From: Ophelia neglecta
Lineage: Eukaryota
Reading direction: 5' to 3'
Assembly: GCA_965285935.1 (NCBI GenBank)
Contig: OZ260661.1
Coordinates: 47,740,001-47,804,000, forward strand
DNA: 64,000 bases
In this document: piece after piece, positions 4,575-22,500 of the stretch
Layout of the letters: each line of letters begins with the position of its first letter
Numbering within the stretch: the first letter of the stretch is position 1
The notes under the pieces: model-generated
Told to the model about the DNA's origin: nothing
The model's database searches: none
Seen by the model: only the letters and a program-made list of their open reading frames with translations
Translations under genes and position numbers: made by a program

Positions 4575-7500
4575 CTGAGAAAAGACATAACTCTGTTGAA
4601 TTTATACTTCTCAATTTCCTTTTCTACGAAAATACTAAACACACAAAAAATTATACACTGATGTGGCAAATCTGGGTTTGTGAGGTTTCAAAATGTAAAT
4701 TTATGACCATTAAACTTTGTTGCTTTATAGTTAACAAATTTTAGAAGTAGTGCTATAAAGTAGTTACCTGGGATGAGCTGTGAGCTGAGTGGGTGTCCAT
4801 CTGCTTGAGTCTGTCTCTCATCTTCTCCTGTAGCGCCCCCTGTTGTGTATGCTGTTCCTCCAGCTCACTTAGTCGGTAAACGGTCTTTTCCAGACGCAGC
4901 CTCAATTGTTCATTGTTAGCCTTCAACTTCCTGTTGTCTTTTCTACCAATGACAAAAAGGTTTCTGTTACAATGACAGGGTAAGTATTAATGGTACTGCA
5001 GAGTAATATTTGCAGTTTTTTTAACATTTTTACAATTTTATCCTGAAATTGTTGTTTGATTCCTAGGGGTGCTTTTCTAAAGTCCATGTCTGCACAAAGA
5101 TTAAGGTAATTAAATTGGGTGAGCATGAAGTGTCCCAATTTGAAACTAAATTTATAATTTTATAAGGTTTACATACAAGATTGAAGTCAAAAATTGGGTA
5201 ATCAATGGAATTGAAAGATTTTATGTTCTAACACAAAACTCTCCTGTTTAATCATTAGGCCTGACATCTGACCAGACCCTTATTGGCCTTGAGGTGTTTG
5301 TGATTCTGTAGACAAACCTGTATCTGGCAACATTGTCTTCTAGTTGATGTGTGAGCTTGCGACACTCCCCCCTCAATCTCTGAACTAAACTCGCCTGACT
5401 ATTTACAATATCCTCCAACTCGGCACTAGTCTGGGCTACAATGGCATAAAAATTAGTAAAATTATAAAACTGCAAACAGTCTGAAGACATTTCAATTTTA
5501 TTGATGTACAGTTCATCATCAGCAATTTATTTCATGATCCCAGAAGCCAGTGCATGCTGGGGCCATGCATGTTAGCCATATTATTCTAAATATTTGTAGA
5601 ATAATGCAAGCTTATTTTATATTTTTAATAATTCAACATTGGAGAATTAATGAAGATTCAACTTTTTCAATATTACAAATGAGGACAACTTTTGGTCAGC
5701 CCCTATCTGTAAGTAGTTTATCGCATGGTACTACTTACAATGTTTTGTTTCCAGGTTGTCTAGTAGCATGTTCAGTTCCATTTCCCGTTGTTCTGCTCTC
5801 TGTCTTGTGGCTTTCACATCATCATTTCTAGTCCTTTCTATGCTTTCCTTCCCCAGCTTAGCCAAGTGAGTCTGAAAAAGAAGCACATTACATCATTTTT
5901 TGGAATACTTTTAATTAAACACCATGGAGGCATTAATTAAAAGGAGTTAATACTGATGACTGCGTTATTATGAACAATAATACCGAACTCTACAGCCCCT
6001 CCACTTAAAGTGCATGGGGATGCTATTGTGGCATGCCAAGCAAAATATTGCCAATTGCTGGAAAGATGAAAACCCCGGATTCCAATAGAAGAAATGATTC
6101 TACACACCATATCAATTTTCTTTTTTCAATTCCTTATCTTACTCATAAGGACTTTTTAGTTTGTTGACTGGTCATTTTCACCAGAAAAATCTAATTAATT
6201 TCATTTCAAGTTTAGAAAAACTAACAATGGTGCAATGAGTGCAAACATTTCATCTGTGTTCCTGTACTTTTCATGGCAATTCCCCCTCCGTCTCGGGGCT
6301 AACTATGCAACAATGACACTCTTGAAACAACTGGTCAGCATAAACGAAGCAGGCTAATCACCTGGGTCCAGTTTCTGGAAGCGGTCTTAACTCTTAATCA
6401 GATTTAGTACAGGATTAAAGTGCTTAATCAGTCTTAACTTGCTAATCTGGGTTTCTGGAAGCTGGATTTGGTCTTACACTTAATCCTGGTCAATGGAAAC
6501 ACAGATTAACGCGGTCTCAGCCAATCGGTAATAGGCTAATCTAATCCCAAAACCTAATACCGCTTCTAGAAACTGGGCCCTGCTCATTGTTAAAACACAA
6601 TGGGGGAATAACAAAATAACAACTTATTACTGACAGAGGACATGTAATGTTCATGTATCAGGGGACAGTCTCATACCTCTCTCTCCAGTGACTGGACTGT
6701 ATTAGTCAGGTGTATACATTCTTCTTTTGTCTCCACCAGATCTTTCTCGGCCATGTTGAGACGACCCCTCAGGTTTTCTAACTCGGTTTTCAGCCTGGAC
6801 TTTTCCTGGTCTCTGTCCTTTTCTAAGTTGTTAAATTCCTTTTTTAGTTTCTGCATATGACCCACTGCTGTGTTTCTCTCCAGAACGGCTTGGGTCATCG
6901 ACATCTTCATGCTATCTGTTGCCTGAGGAGATTGAGGTGCAGAGTTTAAGCAGAGCACATACTTATAGCAACAATAAATCATAGACACAATATGTGTTAC
7001 ACCCCAGATTTCCTGCTTATCTTCTTTTGCAGTGAACTTAACCAAATCTATGTTTATATTTTGCATATATGTAATTGGCTACATTGTCTAAGCATATTAG
7101 ATAGTATTATTTTTTACTGCTGTTTCTACTTAAATTATATTCCCACCATTCCATGTAATAGGTTTTAATAGTATGACAGGGTTGCTAATAGCAACCACCT
7201 ATGGTCTAAGTAGTGTCTCCCTGGTCCCTGATTGTTTTTTTTTCTGTTACATTTTTTATCTAATGAATGTACTTTGTTCACTGTTATTATTTCCCAAGAT
7301 ACTACATGTATGTTTTGGACAGATGCTGATCAAATCTTACTTTCTACAGTAACACTATTTACCTTTCCATAGTCCAGGTCAAAGGAGTTGAGATTCCCCT
7401 TGGTGGCTTCCAGATCAGTCAACAGAGTCATTTTGTCTCTAGTGGTCTTCTCCAGAGAATTCTGTGTCTCCACCAAGCTCTCCTGTAAGTCTTTGATCTA

Positions 7501-10500: not shown

Positions 10501-13500
10501 CGAACAGAGATGAATATGCTTCCGTTTGGAGTGAGTTCATATTTGCCCATTGAGGAGTTTTTTTCCATGTCTTACTTGGTGAGCTTATCAATAGACTGTT
10601 TCTGAGTAGCTCCCAGAGAGGGGGGTAGCACAGCCTCGTTCTGACCGCAGCGGACACACAGGCCTGCAGCTAGGCCGGCCACCTCAGGGTCGACAGAACG
10701 CAACGACTCCTGCATGCGCACTTTGGAATGAAGCTGATCCACCTCCTTCTCATACTGTTGTAACTCCTCTCTAAAAAAAAAACACAATAATGTTCAGAAA
10801 TTAGTAATAATTTTTTTATTTAGCATTAAGTAGGTCCACATCAGCTCAGGAAAATATTGTGACACAGATAAGAAAGAGAAAGATTTTACTTTCAAATACA
10901 GGACAGGAAGGGTTAAAACTCCTGGGAAAACTGTGCAGAAATAATGGTAAAGTTAGATTGCCCAGAGCAATAGATACACAAGGGCTTCAAGGAATGACAC
11001 TTTGGTATGATCATGGGAATATATACAGTAATGGAGGTAATCTGAAATCTGATTTTTTCTAATGGGTGATTGCACATCCCTTTAACAAGGCAAAATATCA
11101 GATCACCAATCTTAGAATGATAATAGGCCTACAAATGAAACTTTCTGAGGCGTGGGAAATGTAGTTTTAACCTGAAAGTCATGTACTTTGTCTTTACAAG
11201 CACAAGATGCCTGGGTTAACATTCATATTGGAGGGGAGCTTTCATAATGTAATGTAATGCACAAGTGCTGGATACCAGTCTGCTGACTTCAGGGAGTCTC
11301 AGAGCAAACATACGGAAGATTTCATTTCCCTTACACAGCAATGAGGTGAGTAGTGACCACATACTCCCAAATATAACAGTTAAACTGCGTATATATGAAT
11401 TTTAAATTTGGATTGGAAACAATTATATATATTTATATATAATTATATATAAATTATATGGATGGCCCTCAGACATTTACAGTCCAAACCCATCATGCAA
11501 ACTCTATTGAAAGCTTGCAAGCTTAATAAATACTCGGTTAAACTTATATTTAAAACTATGAAACAAGAATATATATACATGGAGATTTATACGCTGGTTA
11601 ATAATCATTACTGGTTGTATAGTCATGTAAACAGGACTTGTTATTGAATTAAGGTAGCAAATACCAATACAACAGTAGCAGTGTTTAATAACAGTAAAAA
11701 TACACCTGCACAAACTGGTGTAAACGTATCTGTGTATTAAAGGGGAATGCAAGAGCAGTGGATTGCATTAAACACTGCTCATCAAATCATTGATTCATCA
11801 TTTGGTGCATTACATGTTTCACACTAAGAACTGTTAGTGCTGTGAGTTTTTCTTCAGACTTCTAGTAAAGCTTACTCAGACTGAATTGCACCCTAACCTC
11901 CTGGGTTTCCTGCTACCACATTTTGTGGCTGTAAAATTTGGTCTTAATTTAACACTAAAGAGTCTATCATTTTGCACCCATGTGCCTGATATATAGAATA
12001 GCAATATAATAATGTATTTCCCAGAGATCACATAAGGCACCATCTTTTAGTTCTGGATGGCATTTCTTAAATCAAGTTCTGGATGGCATTTCTTAAATCA
12101 AAGCTCAATATTCACTTAATTCAGTTTTCAAAGTTCATCTTGGGATCAGGGTGCATCTCATGCATACATACATGTATGTTTGAAGGCTCCATAGCTCAGT
12201 ACTGGGTTCATCCATTTGCTTTCATGGTCCACGTGTTAATAAATCATTATGTACCCTTAAACTTGTGTCATAAAACATAAACATGTAGTTTTGTACATAG
12301 TGAAGTTTTAAATACATCAATTTGCAGCCTTCATTTGCATGATTCTACCATCTTCTACCTTTTAAATGATATTACAGTGAAACCTGTGTTTGTGGTCACC
12401 TGTGTAATAAGGTCACCTGCCTACTAAGGTCAATAAATAATGGTCTGATCTCCATAAATGCCTGTGTTAACTGACCTGCCTATTAAGGTCACATGTGAAA
12501 TGTGGTCGGTATTTTCCAGACCCTTGACTGACCTGATTAGATAGGTTTCACTGTATTACTGACAAGTTACAAACCTGGTATGTGTGAGTTGAGCCTCCAA
12601 TCTGCTGACTTTGGCTGTGTGTAAAACCTGGATCCTTTCCTGAAATTACATACATGAATTAAAAAATCATTTTACCAGTGTAGTTCTGAATCTTTTAAGA
12701 TTAAAAGTATGTTTCACCTAACAATAATGTAGCAATGACTGAAAAGGTGATTTAATAGGAGGCAGTCATTCATGATATTGGCTCCTTTATTCATATCAAA
12801 ACATATACATTATAGTCTTGTCTCTTGGAAGTCCTTTGCAATGTGCTGTTTCATTTCTTGTTATTTCATTTATCCATATTTTCAACCAACATAAGTGGAT
12901 GGTTTAATAAACAGGCATGAACTATATATGCTGATAGATTATTGTTGTAAAACCTGTTGATGAAAAAAACATTCTTGTTCTTCTCCCGTTTTTAAGTTGT
13001 ACACTTGATTTTCCTCTGGTAGATTAGATATGGTTTAATATGGTTTATTGAAGCTTGCAGATATTAAACTGTGACTCCATACATGCAGGAGTGTTTTGTT
13101 TGGGAGTTGTGCTAGACTGTGCCCATCCAGAATCCAACTATACTGCCTAGAAGCCATGTGCTCCTCCAACACAATGAATATTTACATCCTTCTCACTCAC
13201 AAACTAATCTATACAGAAACGCCTCCCTGAAAAATCATAATTAGCCAAAAGCAACTCAGGCAGAACTGTTCAATACTGACTCAATAGAATTCTGCTACCA
13301 AATCTACAAATCTCCATCACAGTCATTTGGCTGGGAAATGAGGCACTAGGAGGAAGGAGGTTTCTGGCTAAATGTTAAGAGGCTAGGTAAATACCAGGTC
13401 CAAGAAGTTGGCAGCTTGCGTGTTGAATAATATAACAGTCAAAAGGTTGGTGCTTGACTAGTGATTGCCCTGGGAGAAGAAGTAATCACTTTCTCATGCA

Positions 13501-16500
13501 ACAGTGTCATGAAATATTTCAAAATATCAGTGTTTGGGAGCAATTCTAATATATAAACCAGTGATTCTGGGCCCACTTGGGGAAGCTTTGTCACATAATT
13601 GCAGATAAAGCTTTACCAGAAAGAATGTTCAAATATGGCAATAATAGGTAACTCTATCATGAAAGTTTACTGAATCACACATATAGGACTAGCATTTTTA
13701 TTAGGTCTGAAGGATGGAAATTTAGAAATATCTACAAGTCTCTGATTCTACTTGAGATTAAGACACACTCATAATACAGAAAGGCATTATAAGATCCTGA
13801 CTTGCCTTTTATGACCCCAATGCACCCTCACCCCCAGCCCACCCCCAATCCCACCCAGATCTGCACACCCTCATCCCCTCCCCTTAACCTCGGGCCAGGG
13901 GCTGAAATTATTAGTGAACAGTAGATAGGAGCCAGGTATCCATGTACCCATAGGATACTCCTGGCAGCTGTTGCTTTTCCAGAGGCAGGCATGCATGTTC
14001 CATTCATGATTGTACCATGAATCCAATGGTGCCTTCAACCATGAAGACAATGACAAATTCCATGAATCATTGGAGGAGAACTTGATCAAGGAAATGCATG
14101 AAAATATGCACATGTAACAACTTAGTCTTAAATGTTCATAAGAAGGGAATTGGATAAAAAAAAACTGTACTTAGGAAATCATACAAGGGTTATAATGCCT
14201 AGACCCCCATCCACCCCCCAGTAGATTTATATTGGATAGCTTCTTCAATTCAAACAAAAAACACAATGAGTTTTATCCTGGTGTTTAATGAGTCTCACAA
14301 TAGGCTCCTCCTCTCTGAATAATCATAATGAGCTTCAGCAACTGGCCTGGAACTGTCAATAACACCAGAGTCCCATAACCCACATACCACTTACAGCACG
14401 GAGGGCAAGCCTCCAGCAAACAACCTACTGATCTGGGCTAAACCACACTCACTGTCTAAACATGGATCATGTTGATTGTTTAAGATTAAAATACTAGCCA
14501 ATTACAGAACAGTGGATAAATCAACCATCTAATATCAATAGAAAAACGAAGAAAAAGTTTCAGCTTTAATTAAATGTACTAGTAATTCTGTTCTTAAAAG
14601 AGATGTTCCAAAATGTTTCTGCATCATAAAAAAATATGTAAAATATTATAATTTTAAAATCACAGACATCGCAAGATCTGCTTAACAATGGAATCAATAA
14701 AATTCAAATGGTTTCACCGTGGTTAAACATCAAAATTAAACAACAGGCCCAAGCAGCTAGACTGCCAGAAAATACAGAAGAGAGTGTTTATGTGTATCAT
14801 GTGCATCTTGAGAAGGAAACACATTGTCAACTGACCATATCAACTTATAATTCCGATTAATTTTCGGATATATTTAATAATTGTCTGATAAATTAATTAA
14901 AATTATTCTTCACATAATTTGCTTTTGTGTTCAGCAACAATATGATGTGATCTGACAGCCTGGCTTGAAAATTCATAATGAGGAGAGCAGGACCATGTGG
15001 AACAGATCGCAACACTGGCAGAGCATGAAGACAACGGAATGAGGCCGAGTCAAGTTAGGACTGTAGCTGAGGAAATATTGAGACTTTTAATGATATAAGG
15101 GAGGCAAAAACAAGCAATGTTTTAGTCACTTTTATATTGACAATTAAATTCACATCTATTTGATGCTGATTTTCTTTTGAAATTTCAAAGGTAATTAAGT
15201 CAGCTAATTCACATGTACTGTTCAGTGATAGAGAACTAACTAATGTATACAGTTTTTCTTCACCAATTAGGTTTTATTTTTTTTCTTATATTTGTAGCCT
15301 ACACTTTTGAAAGTATTTAGGATGATCAAAAACATTCCTGTTCTGACCAAAAACAAAGATATTATAAATCTCTATAACATAGGGGATTATAAAATTTAAA
15401 ATAATTATTACATTGTTCTAAAAAAACACCACACCAGGGTTATTAAATTGTAATTATTATTACATCAATGAACACTAGCCCTGATCATGGCTAGGGGCGG
15501 ACACTGATCTGTGTACTATGTGACAAATGCCTCTACTAAGGTGTGACCAGCTGCTCACAACCAAAACTAACGGGACTTGGCATTCCTCGAAAGATCATAA
15601 TGAGATGGTTCTGTGGGAGCTGATTGGTCAGAATGTTAGAATACAGGAATGACATCTGCTGATTGGATCGTTATAAGGCCAGGTGACTAATAGAATGGGA
15701 TTTCAATTTCTTGAAATATCATAATGAGCCACTGGGGCACATGAATCATCTATTAAGGGTTGTCATGGAGACAATAAGAGATGGGTGCTGTACTGATTTC
15801 ACAACTAGTTCATAATGAGCCATTCACTGGTCATCTGGAACTTTTGAGAGATTGTGATTGGTCAGTGAATCGTAAAACAGGTGTTGACGATCTGGACTAT
15901 TTCTAACCAAACCACTGCTTTTGGTCTGACCACTCAGTGCCTCATAATGAGATGTTACAGTGTGAAAGAAAATTCTGGTGCCATGTTGGCACCGGCTATA
16001 GAACCAAACAGAGAGGTCCACCTACGTCAGTCACAGCACTGGTTTTACTGGTACCTCCCCCCCCCCCACTACATGTACTGACCACTCATCTATAAGACTG
16101 ACAAAGATAATTTACAGTGAAACCCCTGATTAAAGACCACCCAAAAATGGCCAAAACAGCTCTTTTAGCAAAACAGTTTGCTATACCTGCCATGTATTTC
16201 AACCCCTGATGAGAGACCACCCCTCATATAAGACCACTTATTTAGGGGTCTCGCATGAGGGGTTCCAATGTGCCATGTTCAATCACTATTGATTCTGTCA
16301 GGTGCAATATGCATAAGGACCAAGAAGGCTTAGATTTTTCTCAAAAATTCATAATGAGGTTGTAGACTTGAGGCAGGACCAGTGGCGTTATTTATGTAAG
16401 GATAATACAGTTAAGGAAGTGTTGAGATTAAGTTGAAGTGTCCAAGGAGAGAAAAATGTCAATAGAGTCTGGAGCTTTTTCCACCGGGATGTGGAATGGA

Positions 16501-19500
16501 ACCATTGAAAGAAAACATGGAGGGTAACCTGAAGATATGAGGGTTCTTAAAAAACTTAACATCTCATTGCTTTGCAAATATACAAAGCCATAATATTCAT
16601 TTAAGAATACTAAGTGCATGGCAAACTCTTTCAATGGGGGAAAGGGTGACATTCACAGATTTCTAAATCTATAATACAGAAGAATCCCTCATGACCACCA
16701 TATTGGTGGTCTTAAAAAAGGGATGGTCCCTCTTCAGGTTTCGAAATTCATAGCCGATATAGCAAACTGTTTCACAAAAAAGACAATTTTTGGATGATTT
16801 TTCATAAGGGCTTCCAGTGTGCTTCAATTTTATGTTGACCATATTCACAGGTACATTTTGCAATCATGAATTTTCCTGTTGCAATCATTCCATATTCACA
16901 GGTACATTTTGCAATCATGAATTTTCCTGTTGCAATCACTCCAGATAATACAGTTCATAAAAAAACATGATACCATCTGACAGTAACAAGACTTGGCATT
17001 CCCTGAAATATCATAATGAGGCAGGAAACTGGACAGTGATTGGTCAGAGTTTGATACTCCCAGAATAAAACTTGCTAATTGGTCCATTGACTAGGAAGGT
17101 GGGTCAAGTAACAGAACTGCAATATTCCTTGAAAATTCAGCCCTCTGGCGGTTTAAATCAGTTCCCATTGAGAGGAACCGTCTGCCACTAATACCAGTCA
17201 AGGGGAAAGGCAGGTGTTCAAATTCTAGCTCAATGAACAACAAAAGTTTTTCCCTTTTATTGCCGATTTTAGATACTGGTAAGTTTTCTGTCACATCTGA
17301 AAATAACTTGTACATTAATTTAGCCCAGGAACAAGTTTCTAGACGACCTGTGTGCATTGCTTTATATAATTTTGAAGAAATAGCTTCTTTTCAATAAACC
17401 ATTACATATCCTATCTCAGCATATTTACTCTTTCCTTCCTCTGCGATCAATGCAAGAGCAGTGAGTTACACTTCTTTTGTTGACAATTGACTGGTAGATA
17501 AAGTGAGATTATGCATTTTCTGGAATTTAGTAATTACATGCAATGGATTCAATATGTCTACAGGGGTCTCCAGGTGTTTAAGGGTTAAAGGAGTGATATG
17601 CAGTCAGATATAACTGTGGAGGGCATTAAGGTGGTCAGCAGGGGTAACAAGTGTCACACTCAGTGCCCTGAAGACTAGGCTTCACCAGTCAACCACTGTT
17701 GTTCACTCATCTATAACAATGACAAAACTACATTGATTAAATACATATGTATATACATTGTTCACAGCAAACAAGGTTTTGATTGTGCCATTGTAAATTC
17801 ACAATGAGATTGTGCCAATAGGGTGGTACTTTAAACAATTCCCTCATTGGAACAAACAATATCAGGAGATTCATAGGATGGGTTTATCATCAGACCCAGA
17901 AAAGATGCAGGCACAGTTTGATGCCAAAAAGACAGAGACAACAAATTGGATGACAACAGAAACTTATAAAATGTATACTAATACAATTTTGAATGTCAAA
18001 GAAATGAACAGTTTGAATTTTTTTTAAATAATCCACATTTTTTCCTGGATGAAATTAAGGTAAATTCACAATTGTGAATTCTTACTGCTGCAAACAGATC
18101 AGATTTACAGCACATAATATTAAAAAAACTGACGATAGCAGAAAGTAAGGTACTTGGCACTCCTTGAAAGATCATAATGAGGAAGCAAAATGTGCCTTGA
18201 TTGGTCAGGTTTGATAATCCAGTAATAGGAGTTGCTGATTGGTCCATTGACCAGGCAGGTGTTTCAAGAAATGGGACTGAAAGATTCCTTGAAAAATCAT
18301 AATGAGGCTGGCTAGTGTGTTCCCATTGAGAGGAACCTCGTGGCACGCGCCAACAGCTAGTGACTAGTCATGAGAAAGAACAGATGTTCAGACTTCCAGC
18401 TCAAGGCATTAAATGGTGTTAGTGGGCTACAATCTAGGATCAGGCAGGGTGATATGCATTGAACAAAGTTAGTATACAATGAGGACTTTATAATTGATAC
18501 ACTGGGACTACTGATGAATCCATCAGACCATGACCATGACCATGTCTAAAAGAACATGTGTCTATTGCTAGGACTTATTGGTCTCAGGATCAACCAACTT
18601 ATGGCCTGCACACCAAGACAAGATTCTCCCAAGAAACACCAGAAAGAGGCCACAATGTACATTTCTTCTCAGCACCTTTATTGTTAATTAATCGATTAAA
18701 AGGCAGTTGTCTTAAATAACAATTTGAAATTGTACTACACAATTATGATTACAGAAATTATGAGACTTCTACTGATATTTCTGTATGAGATAATTCTAAT
18801 TGGACACCATAGGTAATACCATACCTACAATTATAACAATGACAAACGAATAGATCCTTTGTAGTGTCCCTCATTATTGTCCCTGCACAATCAAATCAGC
18901 CATGTTGTATTTCCCAGTCATAAGAGTATTGTGATATTGACAATCTGGATGTGTCAACAGGGGGTGTCACATGGCACTCTTGGGACAACCGCTCTTTGTC
19001 TTTTGGTCTGCCGCCAAGAATGAGGGCTCCAATGAGGAATACTTTACCATTACAAGCTATTAAAACAAGCTACTATATAGCTACATCAAAATACATATCT
19101 AGGCAGTAAAAGGTGAGGTTTTTGATATTTTAAATCCTACCTGACATCTTCGTTTTGAATAGAATAGGAACATTTTTTAACAAACCTAACAGTACCTGGG
19201 TACATGTATTCATAAATTTGCATTGTACATGTATAACCAAATTTGCCTCCCCTTTAAGAGTGCAAATGTCACTGCTGCACAAATTGATCATCACATCACT
19301 CAACAGACACCAGCTGCTAGTTTGAATTTGTTTTTATGTGGGAGAAAGTTGCTTAAAAACAATTTAAGCTGTTCAAGAAAAATGGTTAAGATGAAAAAAA
19401 AGTATTTTTTGGCAAAAAAAGCCATGTTGATTTTTGTGACAATAAGCACTCACTAGTTCCTGGTGCCACTTTCCATAGTCCTGTTTGGACATGGGTTTGT

Positions 19501-22500
19501 GAGGGTCTGGAGGGCTGGATCCTGGGAACAGAGGCTCTCCACCAGGCAGGGTCTTCGGTATCTGTAAATAAAAAACAACCTTGTCACATACTGATCATAA
19601 AAGAATTGATTTAGCTCTAAAGCCGATGAAACATGAATGCTTTAAAAGATGGAGTATCATGTGTGCATGTTCATTATTTGTTCAATTACACAGTAATGAT
19701 GAAATTTAGCATAACCAGGAGGATGTTCATCTCTATTACTTCTGTTGACATATAGGTACTGTAGCTACAAAATTAGATTTGTTTTTCAAATTAATATTGG
19801 CTCTCTTAAAATATCAAACATTAGGGCTAATATTGTCAGCCATAAATTATAAATTTAATATAATTATATCTTAAATCTGCTTTATTATAATTCACTGTAT
19901 TCAGTAACAAACAAGTCACCATAACTACTAGAATATCAGGTAGTCTGCCATCATCAGTAACGTCTGCACTATGATCATGCAGTTTTAACCTTAAATCTTT
20001 GGTCTATATGCAGAAGCACGTAGCAAGTCATAGACTGTGGTTCTGTAAATAAATGTGTACCACTTGACAGAATTCCTTTTACATATACAGATTTCATACC
20101 TGTCTATCTTTATAGAAATGCTTGCTAGAAGCATAGCATATTGATATTTCATTTTTTGATTGCTCAGAAAGGACAGATATCTAGTGGAGCTTGTGTGACA
20201 GTTATCATTTAATACTTACACACACACATATATAAGTACATATATGTACATGCATTTGTCAACTACCTGTACCTTATATGAACAATTTATCTAGTTTCCT
20301 ATCAATATGAATATAGAGTTTGTAACATACAACACACTTAATTCACTGCTGATTTATGTGATGGCCCTCAGCTCAGGGTGGAGTGTTCCATCCTAACAAA
20401 AAACTATTTTTGAATGATCAGCTAGACTTTAAAAAAAGGAAAAGTGTCATCTGGAAGGTGTGCATGTTGTTTGGTGTGAACAGAATTTACCCTGTTAAGG
20501 CTTTAGTGTATCTAGGAGGTATAATAGTACTTTTAATATCATGGAATGAAGTTTTATTAATGTTTATCATTACTTTTAGGATATGACCGTGTCGGCTGCT
20601 TCGTCTTGGAGCAGGGGGGCACGCTGAAGAAGATATGGTGTTAGAGAGATGTGGTGAGGGGAGTGATGGTGACAGCAGTGATTCTGAAGGGACTACCACA
20701 ATACAGAGATGTTATAAGACACTAGCCGCCAAACTGATAGCACTATCACAACAGGTAGGGCAAAATGGCAACCGCATTGCAAAGAATTAACCTGTAATTT
20801 GCCTGTATACTGGTACATTTCGGAAGAGAGTTCGCCTTTTGCCTGCAGCCACATAGGCACAGACAGGGCTAAACTACTTCCTGATATGTGTTAACAAGAT
20901 ATAAATGACTAATTTGTAAATTGCGGAGTTTTCCCACATGTTAAGATGTCTCAGCTCCATTATATTACAACTCATATAAATGTATAAGGCTTACATGTAT
21001 AATGAACAATTGTCACACTTAAATTGGTCAATATAGGCCTACTGGTATTTATTATATGTATGGTCCCTTGCCTTCTTGGTATATTCAGTATGAAACAGGC
21101 CTTGGAGCCCCCAACCCCATCCCCCAACCCCCACCCCACTCCACCCTCCAATCCAGCATTTTGTTATCCTATATTCAACCTCTTAATTCAAAATCTATGA
21201 GTAGTTATTAACAAAGCATTCTCAAAGTAACATATATGATATGCAGATCCTTATAAATAAAACTCATAAAAGTAGGCTCATTCATTTCATTATCAATCCC
21301 ATGCATTCCCGTCACACCTAATAGTAAGCTTTCCTCACTACTGAAATTACCAATTATGTCCTAATCTCCATTATAAGCAGAGTTTTTGTCACAATCGGGC
21401 TGCTGTGTGGCAGAGGGCAGAGAATCTTCTAGAGGGTGTGGCTGGAGTGGGGAAAAGCCACTGAAACAACAGCTTAAATTATCGTGTGATACATGGCTGT
21501 TCTCTCCTACAAAAAAGTCAGCAACCATTTCTGGCATAGCCAAAATATTGCTCTTCCAAATCCCCACGGTCTGCTTGGGGAGACTCGTAGTCCTAACCCA
21601 CATCTGTCAACTCTCCTTGGGCTCCCAGCTCATTTTCTTGATAATCGCCATGGAACCTCAAAAACAATTTCCATATATGACATATTGTCTGCATTTCCTT
21701 CTGGCTCACTTGAAATTGGTGAGAAACTGCCACTGTCACTATTCTTTTCTCTGATTTTAACCATTTTGATACTAATAAATCTGGACAACTAAATGTATGC
21801 CATGAATATACTTGCATAGCAGACTACATGCCAGTCTTTTATACTGGGCACTCATACATGTTATACATGAGATTTGTTATGAATGATGGCAAAATGTACC
21901 TGTATACATAAATGTATGTTGAACCTTTATCCCTACATACTGTAAGACTGGTAGTATACCATCTAAAGAGACCTTATATACTCCAAGCCACTGTGTATAT
22001 ACACTACATTCCAGGTATTACCAATTAATTTGAAGTTTGAGGCGTTCATGTATAACAACAGTCACATAATATGGGTTTTAGGTATATCAGAGACTTCAGA
22101 CAAATCTTTGAAGATCATCCATCAATTGGCACAGACATTAAACCGATCTGGAGTTTTCCAGTACCCCTAGTACATGGTCACTAAAAATAACATACATGTA
22201 TGTCAACTTACCAAAAACATTACTGGCCAGTCGTAAATCCTCTTACGATTAGATAATAAACACAAATCAAGAGTCCGGCCTCCACTTTAGTACCCTTAAA
22301 ATGAGATCTAAGATTGATTGGTTTCCCTCCAACTATGTCACAAGCAAAAGTTCTATGATGCAATTTATGTTATATACATGTACCTTATACCTGCAATAAT
22401 AATATCAACTTCAGCCAAAGTGTAGAATGCATGCTTGAACAAAGTTGCCCACATTACAACTTAATGTACTTGGATGTTCATCTTGGCTATACATGTCAAT

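Follow-up and report, generated by a model that had tools for sequence, protein, structure and literature searches.

The 64-kb window analysed here, a stretch of 64,000 nucleotides from Ophelia neglecta, contains within one intron of the gene SDCCAG8 an array of ten exact copies of the 10-nt word TCATAATGAG, all on the plus strand between 14323 and 18306; the word occurs nowhere else in the window. We tentatively interpret the array as a selectively maintained, single-locus docking platform of about a dozen sites, which would most likely act at the level of DNA, in an enhancer-like manner, through a core of POU/homeodomain type. Since a distantly related species, represented by the stretch L005, holds ten copies in the same intron, the word appears to have been kept by selection; at the level of sequence, what is shown, in the two lineages, is that an 18-nt word built around TCATAATGAG is under purifying selection in each of its roughly ten copies, or in their number.

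Dinucleotide-preserving shuffles of the window yielded a mean of 0.24 copies of TCATAATGAG and a maximum of one, in agreement with a preliminary description of this DNA, which had counted ten same-strand words where fewer than one was expected. The near-variants given in that description are also real. The copies, some of which belong to the duplicated modules described below, are as follows.

13235..13244, plus strand: one-mismatch copy, TCATAATTAG, in a unit of ~90 nt that is ~70% alignable to L005 ~7981 and to window 14323.
14262, plus strand: near-variant copy, CACAATGAG.
14323..14332, plus strand: exact copy, with GGAAC at +26.
14973..14982, plus strand: exact copy, with TGAAA before it and GGAAC at +26.
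15595..15604, plus strand: exact copy, copy A of module 1 (word count, self-comparison).
15719..15728, plus strand: exact copy, copy A' of module 1 (word count, self-comparison).
15810..15819, plus strand: exact copy in a unit of ancestral type (word, N17, GGAAC, N13, TGATTGGTCAG), with the architecture of L005 8867.
15942..15951, plus strand: exact copy with flanks unlike those of all other copies (self-comparison).
16349..16358, plus strand: exact copy, the sole one in the window with GT after it.
17011..17020, plus strand: exact copy, copy A of module 2.
17125..17138, plus strand: decayed copy A' of module 2, with the upstream half retained and the word gone after TCA.
17799..17808, plus strand: one-mismatch copy, TCACAATGAG, polymorphic at 17803 in a sample's contigs.
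18172..18181, plus strand: exact copy, copy A of module 3.
18297..18306, plus strand: exact copy, copy A' of module 3.

Neighbouring copies of TCATAATGAG are irregularly spaced, at distances of 91-1161 nt. Among the other 10-mers of the 6.2-kb region the next best has four copies and the rest have three or fewer, and the presence of a single 10-mer with ten copies argues against uniform decay of a neutral repeat. The reads of one sample were compared as DNA contigs over 5,951 letters and agreed with the assembly; among the variants listed from these contigs none falls inside an exact TCATAATGAG, which is not in itself a test of constraint, and those at 17794 and 17803 lie beside or inside the degenerate copy at 17799.

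The host gene was recognized from matches of PF15964 (SDCCAG8/CCCAP) to exons on the minus strand at 4.7-10.8 kb, and one exon peptide, compared with a representative protein library, retrieved invertebrate SDCCAG8 fragments. Exons were placed one by one by tblastn with the invertebrate SDCCAG8 proteins P0022, P0013 and P0034, and the junctions were read from the sequence. From this placement and the splice junctions it follows that the array fills a 6.8-kb intron, with its words antisense to the gene.

19454..19522, minus strand: SDCCAG8 exon upstream of the array intron; the donor follows 19454.
12640..19453, minus strand: SDCCAG8 intron holding the whole array; 6.8 kb, GT..AG, phase 0.
12574..12639, minus strand: SDCCAG8 exon downstream of the array intron, with the acceptor before 12639; its orthologue is L005:9155-9220.

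The second species was reached through P0001, a protein match of the exon peptide, which led to L005, a 19.7-kb stretch within a 42.8-kb contig of another assembly; a search with the exon peptide for further species carrying the word returned P0001 only. The SDCCAG8 exons of L005 are 72-79% identical to those of the window in protein and 69-76% identical in DNA, or about 72% overall; third codon positions are 46% identical and fourfold-degenerate sites agree in 12/44 cases (27%), and by this measure neutral divergence between the two has reached saturation. The introns cannot be aligned except in patches of 15-50 nt centred on the word. The L005 intron upstream of the orthologue of the exon at 12639, which exceeds 9.1 kb and is cut short where the contig ends, again holds ten exact copies of TCATAATGAG plus variants, all antisense to SDCCAG8 and thus in the same orientation as in the window, with none in the remaining 10.5 kb. 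A blind scan for k-mers present three or more times in both introns returned this word family only (ten occurrences in each, where 0.01 and 0.02 were expected, and none as the reverse complement). Ten copies of the core have remained letter-perfect in each species despite saturation at neutral sites, whereas the spacers drifted freely. This bears out the earlier suggestion that conserved words set among free spacers imply function, as does the comparison within the window, where boxes are 87-100% and spacers 19-42% identical.

Individual units can also be matched between the species. The full layout, consisting of the word, N16/17, RGAAC, N13-14 and TGATTGGTC, is common to window 15810 and L005 8867, and the units at window 13235 and 14323 align with that at L005 ~7981 over ~90 nt with ~70% identity. 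The word-bearing intron is the only long one in the 3' half of SDCCAG8 in L005, where the others measure 0-310 nt; at L005:9933-10229 an intron has been lost, as the counterparts of window exons 8768-8628 and 8003-7845 adjoin each other there. The word-bearing intron of L005 also contains a 314-codon open reading frame (ORF; 6452-7396, minus strand), which resembles the C-terminal part of the ORF2 of a long interspersed element, with a zinc knuckle; read by eye, without a family search, it looks like a transposon insertion and not a nested host gene. In two more distant species, L006 (64% protein identity) and L009 (57%), the flanking exons are present and no word was found in the orientation of the array, even at two mismatches; the corresponding introns are short (~0.7 kb in L006, where the exon match is weak, and 1.8 kb in L009). 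Absence from L006 and L009 and retention in L005 indicate that the array is a lineage-specific innovation retained by two anciently separated species.

The logos of both species share the core TGAAA-NN-TCATAATGAG, often followed by G. By our own count, nine copies from the two species together have RGAAC at +26/27, and some copies carry GGAAC at +26/27 together with an NF-Y-type box, TGATTGGTC, at about +45 (+26 in the three younger modules). Positions flanking the word are species-specific, the word being mostly preceded by A and followed by G or C in the window, whereas in L005 T precedes it and GT follows; GT follows 8/10 copies in L005 and 1/10 in the window. Such flanks imply that part of the amplification or homogenization occurred separately in each lineage. 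Other parts are not conserved across species, namely the TTC half of the upstream word that had been likened to a STAT gamma-activated site (GAS), the spacing of the paired CCAAT boxes, and the AG on which a reading of the word as a sense-strand 3' splice site depends. The preliminary description had placed a GAS-like word 3 bp upstream of most copies. A common upstream element does exist, in the form of (Y)TGAAA, whereas the strict GAS word is confined to a minority: TTCN3GAA lies 3 nt upstream of three of the ten exact window words and of the decayed copy at 17125, and in L005, by reading of the contexts, it accompanies ~3/10 exact words (4/12 copies). Just upstream of the word we counted CTTGAA in 6/22 copies, the others having CCTGAA, CTCGAA, CATGAA and similar sequences; both CTTGAA and the MYB site YAACKG are found in a minority of copies only.

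Comparison of the window with itself showed that a unit of roughly 65-130 bp was duplicated locally and that the word sites are its relics. Three modules have 70-77% identity to one another, the other words being solitary; each module consists of the word, 18 nt, TGATTGGTCAG, 28 nt, TGCTRATTGG, ~45 nt and a second word.

15564..15728, plus strand: module 1, comprising a word, 18 nt, a CCAAT box, 39 nt, a CCAAT box, ~45 nt and a word.
16912..17245, plus strand: module 2, 73% identical to module 3 across 277 nt.
18069..18410, plus strand: module 3.
15621..15631, plus strand: NF-Y-type inverted CCAAT box, TGATTGGTCAG; the identical 11-mer recurs at 15855, 17037 and 18198.
16083..16105, plus strand: shared tail of larger units of 1.2-1.4 kb, also at 17704-17726 and partly at 14047 and 18836.

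The positions given earlier for the boxes of three alignable units were reproduced exactly: ATTGG starts +28 nt from the word start in each (15623, 17039 and 18200), and a second ATTGG follows 39, 39 and 38 nt further on (15662, 17078 and 18238). In the alignment of the three modules 87% of the word block, 100% of the first CCAAT box and 90% of the second are identical in all three, as against 19-42% of the spacers. As a general feature of the array, however, paired CCAAT boxes at fixed spacing did not hold up, being confined to these three younger local duplicates. The shared tail is real, with 91% identity between 16083-16105 and 17704-17726, and its word ACAATGACAAA is present also at 14047 and 18836. 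All five matches (5/5) of the intron to the extended NF-Y consensus RRCCAATSR lie within 15.6-18.3 kb. Such a match lies between -45 and +120 of 4/10 words in the window (P 0.012, among paralogues) and 3/10 in L005 (P 0.06); association of CAGGTG with the word gave P 0.006 in the window, again among paralogues, and was not significant in L005. CCAAT boxes matching the extended consensus occur in both orientations, inverted in the window modules and forward at L005 4894 and 4674.

Several smaller features accompany the modules. Modules 2 and 3 share a conserved short inverted repeat, GTTCC, 9 nt, GGAAC, downstream of their second word (17163-17181 and 18322-18340). A 51-bp tandem duplication (2.1 copies, 98% identical) occupies 16839-16943, just upstream of module 2; it is probably polymorphic, since the sample's contigs skip 49 nt there. 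In the spacer between modules 2 and 3 the same contigs have deletions of 15 nt (17406) and 35 nt (17662-17698) relative to the assembly, which represent indel polymorphisms. Derivation of the modules from the SDCCAG8/CEP170 promoter region was considered and rejected, as they have no similarity anywhere else in the window.

The SDCCAG8 exons placed by tblastn, including the two that flank the array intron, are given here for completeness.

30598-30311, 28132-28025, 26662-26522 and 19522-19454, minus strand: exons 5' of the array intron.
12639-12574, 10778-10575, 8768-8628 and 8003-7845, minus strand: first four exons 3' of the intron.
7497-7363, 6967-6677, 5859-5740 and 5430-5317, minus strand: next four exons.
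4944-4760 and 4577-4491, minus strand: last two exons placed.

The possibility that the unit is a common dispersed repeat, which the preliminary description had named as fatal to its proposal, was pursued in a search of the 762-Mb genome (G000), with a negative outcome: the unit is near-unique to the locus. A 22-nt composite was found at the array only, GAAANATCATAATGAG has ten matches in the genome, five of them at the array, and GAAANNTCATAATGAG has 19, six of them at the array, against five for the reversed control. The pattern word-N14-24-TGATTGG has five matches, three at the array. Bare TCATAATGAG occurs 2108 times, against 1863 for its control, which is background frequency without enrichment. 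An 801-bp unit matched only itself and its local paralogue, module 3. A dispersed repeat or transposon is thus rejected, the composite being essentially confined to the locus and the 801-bp unit having no copy elsewhere. When the whole 5.95 kb was searched, the sole dispersed piece was an insert that does not belong to the array, together with its older inverted copy.

16108..16272, plus strand: high-copy insert of ~160 bp resembling a short interspersed element (SINE) or a miniature inverted-repeat transposable element (MITE), with hundreds of candidates ~90% identical and a contig depth of ~32,000.

The older inverted copy of this element, at ~16672-16820, is ~70% identical and lies 440 nt away; the pair forms an 88-nt inverted repeat. 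A satellite or tandem repeat is likewise rejected, for Tandem Repeats Finder reported no array over the words and their spacing is irregular. Elsewhere in the genome, word pairs 100-130 nt apart occur only within true satellites, which look quite different. Satellites containing the 10-mer by chance, unrelated to the array, lie at C1:149068698-149069463 (period ~126 nt) and, with a period of ~37 nt, at C5:91782217-91782448 and C12:14031244-14031364. In the literature, a search for TCATAATGAG found the word only in primers and siRNAs.

What, then, might the array bind? If it acts as DNA, the words would be candidate binding sites of one protein of POU/homeodomain type and, with the NF-Y-type and E-box sites of some units, would make up an intronic enhancer of homotypic type, or else an architectural element; we infer as its target SDCCAG8 or a neighbouring gene, and the level of DNA rather than RNA. 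TCATAATGAG contains TAATGAG, the core of a Brn-3 probe, and a TCAT half-site as found in a Pit-1 probe; the probes in the literature are TTAATGAG for Brn-3 and TTCCTGAATATGAATAAG for Pit-1 (PMC2425483). This and the resemblances to NF-Y, CHR (cell-cycle genes homology region) and MYB sites are sequence matches only. The level of DNA is favoured by this content of the word, by boxes of promoter or enhancer type, namely extended NF-Y CCAAT boxes in either orientation and CAGGTG, and by the fixed spacing of the boxes while the spacers drift.

A number of observations weigh against such a docking array at the level of DNA. Transcription factor sites are usually less strict than the ten letter-perfect nucleotides of these 20 copies, an invariance that would fit base-pairing, or an RNA- or DNA-binding protein with several modules, at least as well. 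The ~25 copies over both species all have one orientation. A regulon of the putative factor cannot be seen, for the rest of the genome shows no enrichment of the word. The POU genes are located on C7 and C2 and none lies on the chromosome of the array, so that there is no autoregulatory link, and POU autoregulation was rejected for this reason. Association of CCAAT, E-box and MYB-like sites with the word is significant in the window only, among non-independent paralogues, and not in L005. Finally, the array is carried by two species only, which limits both the dating of its origin and copy-by-copy orthology.

Several known systems resemble the array in part. Homotypic clusters of transcription factor sites are found in enhancers, for example in the multi-site autoregulatory enhancers of POU4 (Brn-3) genes. 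Like these, the array has many copies of a short site in a few kilobases of non-coding DNA, with free spacers and accessory sites nearby; it differs in that its sites are identical over all 10 nt, share one orientation, stem from one duplicated unit and occur at a single locus without enrichment across the genome, with no POU gene nearby. Non-coding RNAs such as NORAD, with its Pumilio-site units, the Xist A-repeat and CDR1as, with its miR-7 sites, are platforms built of repeat units. The array shares with them about ten invariant short cores in one orientation, drifting spacers, local duplication, and conservation of both core and copy number between species; it differs in being known from DNA alone, in its irregular spacing and in lying within the intron of a protein-coding gene. 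Arrays of sites for insulator or architectural proteins are another parallel, as in the 12 Su(Hw) sites of gypsy, which occupy ~350 bp and are borne by a transposon. There, too, about a dozen same-orientation copies of a long site (~18-26 bp) are separated by variable AT-rich spacers, whereas the SDCCAG8 array, conserved in an intron of the host, extends over 5 kb and occurs once in the genome. Promoters combining POU (Oct-1) and NF-Y sites, as in histone H2B and other cell-cycle genes, and CHR/CCAAT promoters offer the parallel of an NF-Y-type CCAAT box at a fixed distance from a POU-like word; the array differs from both in being deep intronic, away from a known transcription start, and in containing no octamer. 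In late cell-cycle promoters of the CHR/CCAAT type the canonical CHR words are TTTGAA, TTCGAA and TTTAAA, CTTGAA is a functional variant, and the MYB site is YAACKG (PMC4176359). The likeness here extends to CTTGAA upstream of the word in some copies and to the centrosomal nature of the host gene; it stops at the canonical CHR words, which are absent, and at the CCAAT pair, which is present in three paralogues only.

The serious rival is a platform at the level of RNA, which we consider possible, if less probable than docking on DNA. An RNA-binding protein or a small RNA would find multivalent sites in the words, which would act either within the intron of the SDCCAG8 pre-mRNA, reading CUCAUUAUGA-NN-UUUCA, or within an unannotated antisense transcript, reading UGAAA-NN-UCAUAAUGAG. 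NORAD repeat units and the Xist A-repeat are analogues of such a platform, as are microRNA sponges, in which seed and 3'-supplementary pairing flank a 2-nt bulge. The pattern of conservation, with ten invariant nucleotides, two free and five conserved, is consistent with this, as are the single orientation of every copy in both species, without a reverse complement, an invariance exceeding that of usual transcription factor sites and the lack of genome-wide enrichment. Moreover, transcription of SDCCAG8 certainly includes the sense strand of the array, and in 8/10 cases the L005 word is followed by GT(G/A), which on the antisense strand resembles a 5' splice site or a U1 site; that GT follows only one window copy in ten, and the AG required of a sense-strand 3' splice site is missing in several L005 copies. 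No Rfam family was found, a search at E<=1 giving just two matches at chance level, and when the 20 copies were folded, neither strand gave a hairpin that recurred around the words. Of the places elsewhere in the genome with the complement of the extended motif, 13 in all, none folds like a microRNA precursor. CCAAT-type boxes in both orientations also speak for recognition of DNA.

These searches dispose of some narrower proposals. A cluster of microRNA- or snoRNA-type genes is rejected, as no hairpin, Rfam family or tRNA was found, and so is a complementary microRNA gene elsewhere in the genome. That the words are decoy 3' splice sites, derived by copying the acceptor of the exon at 12639, was suggested by a marginal similarity at 19/22 positions (P ~0.05) and rejected because the AG is not conserved; read on the sense strand, several copies have it displaced or lack it, among them L005 4894, 5992, 4460 and 765.

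A broader proposal, about as tentative as the action of the words in RNA, is that the array is a dedicated, lineage-specific multivalent platform of RNA or DNA which titrates or concentrates one factor, and would be an invertebrate counterpart of elements of the NORAD or Xist-repeat type. With no greater assurance, we suggest that about ten perfect copies of the word may have been kept since before the split of two synonymously saturated lineages, and that the platform may be tied to SDCCAG8 expression or to an unannotated antisense RNA.

It is improbable that the array represents alternative promoters and first exons of an antisense, plus-strand transcript, with modules acting as small promoters (MYB-like, CCAAT and E-box sites) and the word at or near the end of a leader exon. 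The L005 words that stand directly before GT(A/G), including two GTAAG, and the promoter-like boxes of the window modules would fit this, and a GT occurs ~140-160 nt past the second word at one position of the module alignment (17277, GGTAAGT; ~18446; ~15879). Nevertheless, a donor adjacent to the word is missing in 9/10 window copies although the word is perfect, the ORFs from the ATG of the word have 3-44 codons and are mutually unrelated, tblastx shows no conserved coding segment in the intron, and no downstream plus-strand gene was confirmed. Exon ends of 5' splice-site or spliced-leader type are rejected because their pattern holds in L005 only (8/10 as against 1/10); no Sm-like site was noticed by eye in the word contexts examined. 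Coding repeats or a nested gene are rejected as well, since the words fall in all three frames, the ORFs are short and unrelated, and tblastx between the introns returns the word itself only.

We regard it as very unlikely that the array is a decaying local repeat without function, its word surviving by chance, through biased gene conversion or through the mechanism of duplication. The copies clearly arose by local duplication, and their species-specific flanks imply lineage-specific amplification or homogenization. Neutral decay, however, should spare all 10-mers of the unit equally, which is not what the copy numbers show (one with ten, the next with four), and ten exact copies survive in both species despite saturated neutral sites, with no other shared word in the blind scan. 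We know of no process generating conversion tracts of 10-18 nt inside unalignable flanks.

Least credible, and largely refuted, is the first reading of this DNA, in which a composite of STAT/GAS, POU and paired NF-Y sites was proposed as the immune-responsive control region of a downstream plus-strand NOD-like receptor (NLR) gene: TTCN3GAA does lie 3 nt upstream of three exact copies and one decayed copy, but in both species the majority of copies have no GAS word, CCAAT boxes paired at fixed spacing are limited to three paralogues, and 20.5-26 kb is without Pfam and NACHT-domain signal. Ten open plus-strand frames at 20.4-25.9 kb matched no Pfam family. Six of this genome's ~585-codon NACHT exons gave no match to the downstream region at E<=0.01, and a profile built from them scored nothing; 19.5-26.6 kb has no NACHT or leucine-rich repeat signal. 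At E<=10 the same exons gave a sole match, at 20587-20718 on the plus strand (44 residues, 36% identical, E 0.017); this marginal resemblance falls in the part of the NACHT exon that precedes the NACHT domain, at the start of the exon. The word is absent from the 1.5-kb flanks of six intact NACHT loci in the genome. The family itself is very large, with at least 94 scored exons that have uninterrupted frames of ~570-660 codons; C1 and C5 begin with clusters that contain many of these exons (examples of the family are C5:101811437, C1:9180458 and C2:380274).

In conclusion, conserved non-coding elements are usually single blocks, whereas here the conserved object is a repeated word, and everything between its copies has been replaced. 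The array offers a clean and small target for finding the factor that binds it, consisting of a single locus and a single 18-nt probe. As an RNA platform it would rank as a rare example, outside vertebrates, of a regulatory RNA built of repeat units; as a DNA platform it would be an unusually strict homotypic enhancer, open to dissection copy by copy.

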